Source of the DNA: Octopus sinensis | Taxonomy: Eukaryota | Assembly: GCF_006345805.1 (NCBI RefSeq) | Contig: NC_043022.1 | Span: 9,982,001 to 10,046,000, forward strand | Reading direction: 5' to 3' | DNA: 64,000 nt | Shown: in pieces, positions 21,791-58,017 of the stretch | How positions within the stretch are numbered: position 1 is the stretch's first letter | How the letters are laid out: the number at the start of each line of letters is the position of its first letter | The notes under the pieces: model-generated | The model's database searches: none | The model's input: only the letters and a program-made list of their open reading frames with translations | Told to the model about the DNA's origin: nothing | Program-made: the position numbers and the translations under genes

Positions 21791-21890
21791 TTAGAATTCA
21801 GACAAGAACTTTCCAGCCTTCATTTGTTTAGTTTGCCAATCCTTAACAGCAGCGGATACATTATGGAACTTGAATTCTGGGAATTCCTTG
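21791..21890 (-). CDS. rmlD: Copy B last coding exon ([32 protein letters not shown])
   Basis: tttttag acceptor, phase 2, TAA at 21793-21791. AATAAA on the minus strand at 21768-21763. Confidence 0.85.
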
Positions 21891-57800: not shown

Positions 57801-58017
57801 AGACAACTGCACAGCCCTCCTCCAGGGCTAGGTAACCATGTCCACAGTCAGGGGGTACGAGTAGCTGGTACCCATTCTCTTCACTCAGAGTTACACCTAC
57901 CCATTGAAGGTAAGTGCTGGAGTCTGGTCGCGTGTCAACAACCACATCGTAAACTGAACCTTTGATGCAGGTTAAGAGTTTTGAGTAAGCAGCTATATGG
58001 AGTCCACGATGGGCAAA
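21791..58017 (-). CDS. Copy B: spliced RmlC-RmlD fusion gene (NDP-4-keto-6-deoxyglucose 3,5-epimerase + 4-reductase), 5'-incomplete. Exons 58017-57793, 57388-57187, 52740-52623, 46635-46530, 44017-43873, 30981-30857, 28680-28585, 26858-26730, 24240-24131, 21890-21791
   Basis: Ten exons with AG/GT boundaries and matching phases join into 1356 nt of open frame (451 aa + TAA). RmlC motifs: [28 protein letters not shown]. RmlD motifs: [54 protein letters not shown]. Intron 30856-28681 spans the N gap. Confidence 0.88.
23574..24058. repeat. Compound microsatellite (ATG)n-(ATC)n-(ATT)n
   Basis: Direct reading. Confidence 0.95.
24131..24240 (-). CDS. rmlD: Copy B exon ([36 protein letters not shown])
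   Basis: aatttcag acceptor, gtaagt donor, 110 nt. RmlD-type A.RP motif. Confidence 0.88.
24378..24710 (+). mobile_element. tRNA-derived SINE (parent family of the 117-bp array)
   Basis: A box tggctcagtggttag and B box gagttcgaatcc, followed by gtgttcttgagcaagacact...ccagttcactcagct. Confidence 0.8.
24745..25210. repeat. Long palindrome (~170-bp arms) enclosing the hammerhead motif; probably Penelope pLTR-derived
   Basis: Arms 24745-24915 and 25050-25210 are near reverse complements. Confidence 0.8.
24948..25051 (+). ncRNA. Putative minimal type-I hammerhead ribozyme
   Basis: taac-CTGATGA-gtggctatattt...aaatatagtcac-GAAA-c-atgt-GTC-gtta. Complete core, stem II, 4-bp stem I, and a short stem III closed by palindromic ACATGT. 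Confidence 0.7.
26207..26590 (+). mobile_element. tRNA-derived SINE with A-tail and TSD, specific to copy B
   Basis: TSD ataatagtgt on both sides. Empty site in copy A at ~8722-8745 (reverse complement). Confidence 0.85.
26730..26858 (-). CDS. rmlD: Copy B exon ([43 protein letters not shown])
   Basis: ttcatag acceptor, gtaagt donor, 129 nt. Overlaps ORF-track 26646..26831. Confidence 0.9.
28585..28680 (-). CDS. rmlD: Copy B exon ([32 protein letters not shown])
   Basis: ttttccag acceptor, gtaaga donor, 96 nt. Confidence 0.88.
28835..29355. repeat. (GATA)n/(GACA)n microsatellite
   Basis: Direct reading. Confidence 0.95.
29750..29849. other. Assembly gap (100 N)
   Basis: Run of N. Lies in a copy B intron. 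Confidence 1.
30290..30791 (-). mobile_element. Internally deleted Tc1/mariner element
   Basis: Imperfect ~45-bp TIRs, TA flanks, transposase tail [35 protein letters not shown] on the minus strand. Confidence 0.8.
30857..30981 (-). CDS. rmlD: Copy B exon with catalytic YxxxK ([41 protein letters not shown])
   Basis: tttgtag acceptor, gtgagt donor, 125 nt, phase 1/0. Confidence 0.9.
31570..32050 (-). mobile_element. Abundant SINE-like repeat ending in ...ggacgttaaacgatgatg (copies ~1795-2085, 6625-6860, 12770-12980, 18770-19140, 30080-30265, 53910-54120)
   Basis: Recurrent catcatcgtttaacgtcc...ctggatgcccttcctaacgccaaccactccg core. Confidence 0.8.
32050..32356 (-). mobile_element. RTE LINE 3' fragment of the same family
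   Basis: [37 protein letters not shown] matches the end of the 62659-64000 frame. Confidence 0.85.
32888..33137 (+). repeat. Polypurine (GA-rich) tract next to the distal end of the 117-bp array
   Basis: ~250 nt composed almost entirely of G and A. Confidence 0.85.
33178..43722 (+). repeat. Tandem array of ~90 x 117-bp units derived from a tRNA-like SINE head, intronic in copy B
   Basis: Unit gctaatggttaggatgttgcactcatgacttctagattgtggtttcaattcctggactgggcagtgcattgtgttcttgagcaagacacttcatttcatgttgctccagtccactca. Period 117 (e.g. 33189, 33306). Homologous to the SINE head at 24378-24500. Confidence 0.97.
43873..44017 (-). CDS. rmlD: Copy B exon, RmlD (AYLVNRDS...[24 protein letters not shown])
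   Basis: cattgcag acceptor, gttagt donor, 145 nt. Identical to copy A exon 2722-2866. Confidence 0.9.
44560..45425. repeat. Penelope-like inverted plus direct repeat structure with a degenerate hammerhead-like motif
   Basis: Palindrome ~44790-45010, direct repeat 44882-44945 vs 45360-45422, ctgatga...gaaac at ~45222-45320. Confidence 0.55.
46530..46635 (-). CDS. rmlD: Copy B exon, RmlD ([35 protein letters not shown])
   Basis: ttattacag acceptor, gtttgt donor, 106 nt, phase 2/0. Matches the RmlD kPdvVi.cAA.T.Vd.cE.e pattern. Confidence 0.87.
46831..52094. mobile_element. Tc2/pogo-like non-autonomous DNA transposon, split by the Tx1-like LINE
   Basis: TIRs ccgtaaatcctcgagtata / tatactcgaggatttacgg, flanked by TA at 46829-30 and 52095-96. 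The flanks rejoin into a SINE like the one at ~46270-46400. Confidence 0.8.
46968..51815 (+). mobile_element. Near full-length, degenerate Tx1-like (L1-group) non-LTR retrotransposon; ends approximate
   Basis: ORF1 remnant with CCHC knuckle [14 protein letters not shown] (~47611-47652). APE endonuclease from 48195 ([22 protein letters not shown]). RT 48931-51021 ([30 protein letters not shown]). C-terminal Cys/His motif. A-rich 3' end. Frameshifts and stops present. Confidence 0.9.
52623..52740 (-). CDS. rmlD: Copy B exon, RmlD N-terminal part ((V)[38 protein letters not shown])
   Basis: tatttctag acceptor, gtaggt donor, 118 nt, phase 1/2. Completes GQVG and supplies the VIGT and DL motifs. 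Confidence 0.82.
52788..53375 (-). mobile_element. CR1-like LINE 3' fragment, same family as 521-1023
   Basis: [26 protein letters not shown]...[11 protein letters not shown]. Same 3' UTR and tail. Confidence 0.85.
54210..55147 (-). mobile_element. Internally deleted Helitron retaining a Pif1-like helicase C-terminus
   Basis: 5' TC, 3' hairpin (cccgggcaatgctggg) plus CTAG, inserted between A and T. ORF 54332-54973 has [47 protein letters not shown]. Confidence 0.88.
55338..55733 (-). mobile_element. Non-autonomous Helitron
   Basis: 5' a|tctttatatataaaag, 3' cccgagcaacgccgggtgatactgCTAG|t. Confidence 0.8.
57187..57388 (-). CDS. Copy B fusion-junction exon: RmlC C-terminus plus RmlD N-terminal Rossmann strand
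   Basis: [67 protein letters not shown]. ttttctag acceptor, gtgagt donor, 202 nt, phase 0/1. Not in the ORF track. Confidence 0.88.
57793..58017 (-). CDS. rmlC: Copy B exon, RmlC cupin core (FAHRGLH...[10 protein letters not shown], 75 aa)
   Basis: ttttcccag acceptor, gtaagc donor, 225 nt, phase 0/0. Has RGLH His, KL Lys, [33 protein letters not shown] and VVY Tyr, typical of dTDP-4-dehydrorhamnose 3,5-epimerase. Confidence 0.92.

Follow-up and report, generated by a model that had tools for sequence, protein, structure and literature searches.

A spliced RmlC-RmlD fusion gene in Octopus sinensis, present as two convergent copies, probably old in animals and predicted to form a nucleotide-activated L-rhamnose

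Introduction

Are there animals other than nematodes that carry the enzymes for L-rhamnose synthesis? To date, an L-rhamnose pathway has been described in animals only for Caenorhabditis elegans (the RML pathway), and nematodes have been regarded as unique among animals in this respect, with the epimerase RmlC absent from other eukaryotes (PMC10473587). The question is raised by a stretch of 64,000 nucleotides (nt) of the Octopus sinensis genome (GCF_006345805.1, NC_043022.1, forward strand, 9,982,001-10,046,000), hereafter the window. In this stretch an earlier note, made from the sequence alone, had read a spliced gene that joins an RmlC-type epimerase to an RmlD-type reductase, and had suspected a cephalopod source; the proteins encoded in the window match O. 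sinensis exactly. On the evidence presented here, the gene probably belongs to a eukaryotic family of RmlCD fusions and is predicted to make nucleoside diphosphate (NDP)-beta-L-rhamnose; the family is old in animals and has two convergent copies in Octopus.

A spliced RmlC-RmlD gene in the octopus genome

The longer of the two copies in the window, copy A, lies on the minus strand. A tblastn search with an RmlD probe located four of its exons independently of the coordinates in the earlier note. Further exons were found by comparison with the duplicated copy in the window and from frame translations, splice sites were set by inspection at the nucleotide level, and the small exon at 52740-52623 was recovered by a phase-constrained scan. 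The rebuilt gene has ten exons from 58017 to 21791 (Table 1), every one of them with a polypyrimidine-AG acceptor and a GT donor and with phases that agree, and the exon sum of 1356 nt corresponds to 451 amino acids (aa) and a TAA stop. The number of exons, the protein length and the end point are the same as those proposed earlier. The translation is identical (451/451) to residues 57-507 of two O. sinensis proteins, XP_029651548.1 and XP_036369585.1, and differs from Octopus vulgaris CAI9741286.1 at two positions (449/451 identical). An in-frame donor at 43921, which would shorten the protein to 435 aa and its loop to the length that is canonical in bacteria, was rejected, since the long loop between the STNY and YGKSK motifs is kept in all cephalopod homologs, including those derived from mRNA.

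Copy A has no start codon in the window and residues 1-56 of the annotated protein have no coding sequence there. A 5' RmlC exon was not found in 58018-64000 when this interval was probed with bacterial RmlC sequences and subsequently with the annotated N-terminus. As these 56 N-terminal residues are absent and the Argonauta gene, with 11 coding exons, has a single 5' coding exon of 56 codons, copy A must extend past position 64000. Copy A is confirmed as a real spliced gene with ten of its eleven coding exons inside the window.

The exon at 57388-57187 is a single open frame that runs from the C-terminus of RmlC via a linker of ~15 aa into the Rossmann strand of RmlD. With the junction inside a single exon, the two domains are united without recourse to any splice model, and the earlier statement that the fusion is not a splice-model artefact holds. 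A fused homolog of 503 aa (P0015), 52% identical to the octopus protein and close to a protein of Acanthosepion pharaonis, was present as an uninterrupted open reading frame (ORF) with untranslated regions on contigs of 1.7-1.9 kb from six independent sequencing runs of a cuttlefish-like species, and two other fused ORFs (P0016 and P0017) were found on contigs of 2.1 and 2.6 kb. The fused gene spans 30 kb in Argonauta and more than 36 kb in the octopus window, with ten introns in octopods, and these contigs are therefore most readily explained as spliced mRNA. The decapod fused transcripts retain the long loop between STDY and YGxSK. RmlC and RmlD thus appear to be made as one polypeptide from one mRNA, with the transcript support coming from the cuttlefish-like relative.

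Domains, catalytic residues and predicted structure

Both Pfam families for which the earlier note had proposed a HMMER search were matched far above the gathering cut-off, which is 27 bits for each. PF00908 (dTDP_sugar_isom) scored 134.8 bits over residues 7-176 (profile positions 2-166 of 168) and PF04321 (RmlD_sub_bind) 175.3 bits over residues 189-478 (profile positions 2-267 of 287); the part encoded in the window alone spans positions 54-166 of the PF00908 profile. The N-domain aligned end to end with Salmonella RmlC (1dzr), with H63, K69, H116, Y129 and D170 falling on the catalytic residues of the bacterial enzyme (His63, Lys73, His120, Tyr133 and Asp170). The first four are encoded in the exon at 58017-57793, which carries FAHRGLH...VVYCQ, with His63 in RGLH, His116 in CGHG and Tyr129 in VVY. 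The C-domain aligned with the RmlD enzymes 2ggs, 3sc6, 1vl0 and 1kbz, and Thr301 (STNY), Tyr339 and Lys343 (YGKSK) fell on the triad of short-chain dehydrogenases/reductases (SDRs), for which the Salmonella RmlD reference residues are Thr104, Tyr128 and Lys132. All RmlC and RmlD residues that had been named as catalytic from the first reading align with those of 1dzr and 1kbz. H63, K69, H116, Y129, D170, Y339 and K343 were unchanged in 15 fused homologs.

An AlphaFold2 model computed from the alignment of the 15 homologs had a predicted local distance difference test (pLDDT) score of 89.5 and a predicted template modelling (pTM) score of 0.90. When the model was searched with Foldseek, the N-domain matched the RmlC structures 1ep0 and 1dzr with template modelling (TM) scores of 0.85-0.88, as a cupin jelly-roll, and the C-domain matched RmlD structures with TM scores up to 0.92. 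No solved structure found by Foldseek spans both halves of the model. Alignment and predicted structure together confirm the copy A protein as a complete RmlC cupin to which an RmlD short-chain reductase is joined on the C-terminal side, with the catalytic residues kept.

Annotation of the gene and the relation to MAT2B

The RefSeq name of XP_029651548.1 is 'methionine adenosyltransferase 2 subunit beta', in line with the MAT2B-like label that had been foreseen from the sequence. In public animal genomes, members of the fused family are named MAT2B, SpsK or as a reductase only. The gene already has entries in the annotation of three Octopus genomes. The older annotation of Octopus bimaculoides (XP_014790046.1, XP_014787525.1 and XP_014787528.1) divides the fused protein between a 'dTDP-4-dehydrorhamnose 3,5-epimerase' of 200 aa, located on a contig of 3 kb, and a pair of 'SpsK' fragments of 247 aa each. 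This split probably reflects fragmentation of the assembly or annotation and not a true separation of the domains.

Taken literally, the MAT2B names would make the protein a non-catalytic regulator of S-adenosylmethionine synthesis with an extra N-terminal cupin. The RefSeq and UniRef names are in agreement with this possibility, as are the human MAT2B structures among the top matches of the C-domain (74 bits, TM 0.80-0.85) and a PNR(K)R motif ahead of the first strand that is common to MAT2B and the octopus protein. However, human MAT2B scored 110-135 bits against free-standing RmlD proteins and only 54-85 bits against the fused family. It reached 72.7 bits with the octopus protein, rank 160 of 228, and no MAT2B orthologs occurred among the top 150 relatives of the latter. 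The best sequence matches of the C-domain in the PDB were RmlD enzymes (88 bits), the fusion is also present in green algae and haptophytes, and a complete RmlC domain with conserved catalytic residues would serve no MAT2B function. A role as MAT2B is very improbable on these grounds, and the comparison of the sequences indicates that the label is an automatic transfer from the best-known animal RmlD-like fold, not a sign of orthology.

Relatives and origin of the fused gene

An exhaustive search of 1.84 billion representative proteins yielded ~20 clusters that match the octopus protein along its whole length. The named full-length relatives were from the amphioxus species Branchiostoma belcheri and B. 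floridae (38% identical), the tunicate Styela clava (36%), Micromonas pusilla, Pycnococcus and Pseudoscourfieldia; a fused homolog was also found in Argonauta, and one fused cluster was located in a compact, intron-poor protist genome. A further profile search for named animal homologs gave no new named taxa among the matches listed. A haptophyte-like relative (P0057), which is 34% identical to the octopus protein over residues 8-495 (E = 2.8e-67), was the best match to the RmlCD sequence of the haptophyte Prymnesium parvum, with 64-69% identity over in-frame stretches; the DNA of P. parvum was taken by machine reading from the supplement of PMC6556577 and contains frameshift errors. In a tblastn search against this DNA, the octopus protein itself matched over residues 46-493 (E = 4.6e-44). 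The fused family has several traits that are missing from the bacterial enzymes, namely CGHG where these have FAHG, the motif YxQGG, and a deletion of four residues that follows RGLH. A second and more distant fusion group was set apart by a long branch in a neighbour-joining (NJ) tree and probably represents the bacterial fusions of bioRxiv 10.1101/854612.

The earlier note had treated the fusion as more singular than it is: the fusion is real, and it also occurs in tunicates and amphioxus in addition to the three annotated Octopus genomes.

The introns are informative on the age of the gene. The ten introns of the Argonauta gene match the octopus intron columns and phases, including the intron just upstream of 58017. 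Of the eight introns in Styela, five agree with those of octopods in both alignment column and phase (Table 1), compared with ~0.06 coincidences expected by chance (P ~9e-10). The amphioxus gene has a single intron at an unrelated position and the Pycnococcus gene has none, so that neither locus offers informative introns. The near-intronless gene of B. belcheri could have arisen as a retrocopy or through massive loss of introns. The five introns common to octopods and Styela show the fused, spliced gene to be old in animals, and they argue against a recent transfer from bacteria. The simplest reading of the shared introns is that the fused, intron-bearing gene predates the protostome-deuterostome split and was later lost many times, although an ancient transfer of the spliced gene between eukaryotes may have taken place instead. 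Of the 'ancient or horizontal origin' proposed earlier, the ancient part is now favoured by the five introns shared with Styela.

It might be suspected that the gene is a contaminant or was acquired recently, by horizontal transfer, from bacteria or algae, because the RmlC and RmlD families are mainly prokaryotic and their distribution in animals is patchy. The animal sequences were furthermore not monophyletic in the NJ tree, a simple tree that leaves their monophyly unsettled, and the single amphioxus intron would fit a transferred gene. Against this stand the ten spliceosomal introns over more than 36 kb with animal-type retroelements and a satellite, the occurrence of the gene in Argonauta and three Octopus genomes as well as among decapod transcripts, and the five introns in common with Styela. 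Such an origin is hardly credible, and contamination and a recent bacterial transfer into octopus can be taken as refuted.

Two further sequences touch on the family. A contig of a metagenome assembly (ENA ERZ21867824) carries at 10001-10261 a decapod-like RmlC exon that is 68% identical to that of the octopus and ends in ...VIYCQ directly before gt; no junction exon was found within 10 kb of it on the contig. A long terminal repeat (LTR) retrotransposon with a 946-aa pol ORF lies a few kb downstream, and the contig looks like cephalopod host DNA. A 431-aa protein from an AT-rich sequence (P0038, JGI/Logan) has an RmlC of the eukaryotic subtype (CGHG, TCIKG) joined to an NRS/ER-like reductase and not to RmlD, and resembles the RmlC-NRS/ER fusion of Rhizaria described in PMC6556577.

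A second, convergent copy

The RmlD probe also matched the plus strand, where the last six exons of a second copy, copy B, occupy 2722-13396; this inverted paralog had been overlooked in the first reading of the window. The first five coding exons of copy B lie to the left of position 1. The six exons encode 234 aa that are all identical to residues 274-507 of O. sinensis XP_036369587.1 ('MAT2B-like'). Copies A and B are arranged tail-to-tail in convergent orientation, with their stop codons 8.4 kb apart. In O. vulgaris, each paralog has a separate ortholog, with the consecutive accessions CAI9741286.1 and CAI9741287.1, and an ortholog of each is also found in O. sinensis and, as fragments, in O. 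bimaculoides. As each paralog has its own orthologs in these species, the duplication is real and older than the Octopus species concerned. In the NJ tree it was placed after the split from Argonauta with 100% bootstrap, which indicates that the fused gene was duplicated in the Octopus lineage after the divergence from Argonauta. The possibility that copy B is a pseudogene or an assembly artefact was considered and rejected in view of its intact frames and splice sites, the 234/234 match to a separate RefSeq protein and the orthologs in three Octopus assemblies.

The identity between the two copies is a mosaic. It amounts to 97-100% across the STNY exon and ~770 nt around it (2624-3393 versus 44115-43346), and to 99% at the AEIFNLDTS exon (24240-24131 and 11048-11157), which lies in a block of high identity (11021-11181 versus 24268-24107). 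The YGKSK exon (83%) and the last exon (84%) have diverged, and other regions are 81-88% identical. Such a pattern would be produced by local gene conversion acting on the two inverted copies, which it therefore suggests. For the diverged exons, the ratio of nonsynonymous to synonymous substitution rates (dN/dS) between the paralogs was ~0.42 and both frames were intact, pointing to constraint on both copies, though not a strong one.

Assembly gap and repeats in the introns

The only run of N in the window, an assembly gap (Table 1), lies in the copy A intron between the exons at 30981-30857 and 28680-28585, at a distance of 1107 nt from the donor site and of 1069 nt from the acceptor site. 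The flanking exons join as ...ALIIRTS followed by GVFGHD..., and this position is gapless in the alignment of the 15 homologs, mRNA-derived ones included. The intron measures 2176 nt with the 100 N counted, versus 2097 nt for its counterpart in copy B. No coding sequence, exon or reading frame of copy A depends on the gap. When the paralogous intron was used to examine continuity across it, only dispersed repeats aligned and continuity was not shown. TATG/TA repeats border the gap on its left side and are probably its cause.

The introns are rich in repeats. The largest array is a 117-bp satellite in copy A; the counterpart intron of copy B (3017-3621) holds only ~5 copies of it, in two blocks of opposite orientation that meet at 3393. 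Transposon-derived ORFs lie within copy A introns at 48931-51021 (+), 59268-61960 (-) and 54332-54973 (-), and include a reverse transcriptase (RVT_1, 696 aa). Pieces of retroelements with a gag-aspartyl protease, an RNase H-like domain and an integrase core were also recognised, together with a fragment of a Pif1-helicase 2B domain that is possibly Helitron-like.

Table 1. Exons of the two copies, other features of the window and introns shared between Styela and octopods. Positions are those of the window; for shared introns the site in the protein alignment is given.
Feature	Position	Strand	Description
Copy A coding exon 2 of 11 (first in window)	57793..58017	-	RmlC core, residues 57-131
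Copy A junction exon	57187..57388	-	RmlC C-terminus (DWP, SEKD Asp170), linker, RmlD start; ends in phase 1
Copy A exon	52623..52740	-	VGQLFF...KTAA(K); remainder of Rossmann motif and beta2
Copy A exon	46530..46635	-	35-residue stretch
Copy A exon	43873..44017	-	Catalytic Thr of STNY
Copy A exon	30857..30981	-	YGKSK (Tyr339, Lys343)
Copy A exon	28585..28680	-	32-residue stretch
Copy A exon	26730..26858	-	Stretch ending in GVKI
Copy A exon	24131..24240	-	AEIFNLDTS...STAKF(R)
Copy A last exon	21791..21890	-	TAA stop at 21793-21791
Copy B STNY exon	2722..2866	+	100% nt identity to copy A exon
Copy B YGKSK exon	4782..4906	+	83% nt identity to copy A
Copy B exon	7004..7099	+	Canonical splice sites, intact frame
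Copy B exon	8474..8602	+	Canonical splice sites, intact frame
Copy B exon, AEIFNLDTS...	11048..11157	+	99% nt identity to copy A
Copy B last exon	13297..13396	+	TAA stop; canonical acceptor, intact frame
Assembly gap	29750..29849		100 N; intronic
117-bp satellite	33183..43722		~90 copies, 95% identity; most of the intron between STNY and YGKSK exons of copy A
Intronic microsatellite	23631-24040		(ATC)n, ~139 copies
Intronic microsatellite	28834-29356		(TAGA)n, ~131 copies
Intronic microsatellite	10659-10778		(TA)60
Shared Styela-octopod intron 1	after VY(C/A)Q		phase 0
Shared Styela-octopod intron 2	Rossmann motif, after G(Q/K)		phase 1
Shared Styela-octopod intron 3	K of (A/G)KD		phase 2
Shared Styela-octopod intron 4	before (I/T)(Q/R)(C/S)P		phase 0
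Shared Styela-octopod intron 5	R/K preceding last exon		phase 2

Predicted function

Each gene encodes one polypeptide of ~507 aa composed of an RmlC-type 3,5-epimerase cupin, a short linker and an RmlD-type 4-ketoreductase of the extended SDR class, dependent on reduced nicotinamide adenine dinucleotide (phosphate), NAD(P)H. In the proposed mechanism, the substrate, uridine diphosphate (UDP)-4-keto-6-deoxyglucose, would be supplied by the animal 4,6-dehydratase of the TGDS type, which is plausible because vertebrate TGDS was shown to make this compound (PMC12488480). In the cupin, the His63/Asp170 dyad would act as base and Tyr129 as acid, Lys69 would stabilise the enolate, and C3 and C5 of UDP- or deoxythymidine diphosphate (dTDP)-4-keto-6-deoxy-D-glucose would be inverted. 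The unstable 4-keto-L-rhamnose would then be handed directly to the fused reductase domain, where Thr301, Tyr339 and Lys343 would reduce C4 to give NDP-beta-L-rhamnose. The characterised relative, P. parvum RmlCD, makes both TDP- and UDP-beta-L-rhamnose in vitro (PMC6556577), and by analogy the octopus protein likely converts UDP- or dTDP-4-keto-6-deoxyglucose to the corresponding L-rhamnose nucleotide.

Several observations weigh against this assignment. The NCBIfam equivalog models TIGR01221 (rmlC) and TIGR01214 (rmlD) were matched with 113.2 and 172.4 bits, under their respective cut-offs of 155.75 and 224.05, and the octopus protein is therefore a divergent family member and not a certified functional equivalent. 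The Rossmann motif GxxGxxG reads SSKGQVG in octopods, with Ser at the first Gly and the second and third Gly invariant (IISSKGQVG in octopods versus IIGSTGQVG in decapods and IGASGQVG elsewhere), and Gly was present at the first position in 187 of 200 retrieved RmlD-type sequences. Octopods also carry STNY instead of STDY. A literature search for rhamnose in cephalopod glycans found no report, and nothing relevant was found in the literature on cephalopod RmlC/D or its horizontal transfer.

Some of these observations would also be expected of a dead or decaying enzyme, in which cofactor binding had been lost through the Gly-to-Ser change and the copies were drifting. The Ser is present in every octopod copy, STDY is changed, and the paralog dN/dS is not very low. 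It is, however, below 1, the frames and canonical splice sites are intact in both copies, and the catalytic residues are invariant across the fused homologs. The Ser itself is common to Octopus and Argonauta and was kept across their deep split with the rest conserved. Moreover, it also occurs in three unrelated and otherwise normal free-standing RmlD homologs among the 200 retrieved sequences. A relic is improbable on this evidence.

A different product has more in its favour, though it too is unlikely. The product of the fused enzyme might be a different 6-deoxyhexose, for example 6-deoxy-L-talose, or a sugar epimerised at one centre only. Alternatively, the enzyme might mainly consume or buffer UDP-4-keto-6-deoxyglucose, by which TGDS rescues UXS1 in vertebrates (PMC12488480). 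The PDB matches of RmlC-like cupins include 3-epimerases, 5-epimerases and heptose epimerases, the stereochemistry of the reductase is not revealed by its sequence, and the TGDS product has a biology in animals that is independent of rhamnose (PMC12488480); the equivalog scores and the silence of the literature on cephalopod rhamnose would fit as well. The products of the P. parvum relative (PMC6556577) and the conservation of the whole RmlC catalytic set for double epimerisation argue for NDP-beta-L-rhamnose, whose synthesis by the fused enzyme we consider probable.

Significance

The fusion family has been known since 2019 and the octopus gene is annotated, under misleading names; a literature search found no papers on the animal members. 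The sequences suggest that some animals beyond nematodes can make rhamnose-like sugars, and the locus would indicate an old animal capacity for rhamnose-type 6-deoxy sugars derived from the product of TGDS, an enzyme whose role in animals did not become clear until 2025 (PMC12488480). Should the protein be active, cephalopods are expected to contain rhamnosylated glycans or metabolites that are as yet unexplored, TGDS would gain an evolutionary context, and a systematic misannotation (MAT2B, SpsK, reductase only) in several animal genomes would be corrected.

More tentatively, cephalopods, and probably tunicates and amphioxus, could have kept a bilaterian route from TGDS through RmlCD to UDP-L-rhamnose, with Octopus isoenzymes that differ in specificity and with loss of the second half in vertebrates. 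If this is true, nematodes are not the sole rhamnose-making animals, the 'orphan' vertebrate TGDS is the surviving first half of a pathway, and the duplication in Octopus with its mosaic gene conversion has led to two isoenzymes of different sugar or nucleotide specificity.

Comparison with known systems

The RmlCD of P. parvum (CAMPEP_0191228776; Wagstaff et al. 2019, PMC6556577), already named as a precedent in the earlier note, is the sole characterised relative in the literature searched. It has the same architecture of RmlC, linker and RmlD in ~500 aa and is collinear with the octopus protein along the full length, as seen via the haptophyte-like relative P0057. The family of the P. parvum type and the octopus protein share the deletion after RGLH, xCGHG and YxQGG, and IGASGQVG occurs in most members. 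The octopus differs in having an animal nuclear gene with ten introns and a tandem inverted duplication, and octopods further differ in the Ser at the first Rossmann Gly and the longer loop between STNY and YGKSK; the octopus function is a predicted one.

Salmonella RmlC (1dzr) and RmlD (1kbz) have the same folds and catalytic residues as the octopus domains and presumably the same chemistry. The bacterial enzymes are, however, two separate proteins with ~25-35% identity to the octopus domains, and they use dTDP sugars, whereas animal TGDS supplies a UDP sugar.

Human MAT2B resembles the octopus C-domain in its RmlD-like SDR fold and similar length, with ~23% identity. Unlike the octopus protein, it has no cupin, is a regulatory subunit and is nearer to the unfused RmlD proteins.

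The C. elegans epimerase RML-3 is an RmlC-type cupin like the octopus N-domain. RML-3 and RML-4 are encoded by separate genes, RML-3 is reported to have been acquired from bacteria specifically in nematodes, and the reductase RML-4 is of the NRS/ER type. In the octopus gene, by contrast, the epimerase is fused to an RmlD-type reductase, and the gene is part of a different fusion family found across eukaryotes.

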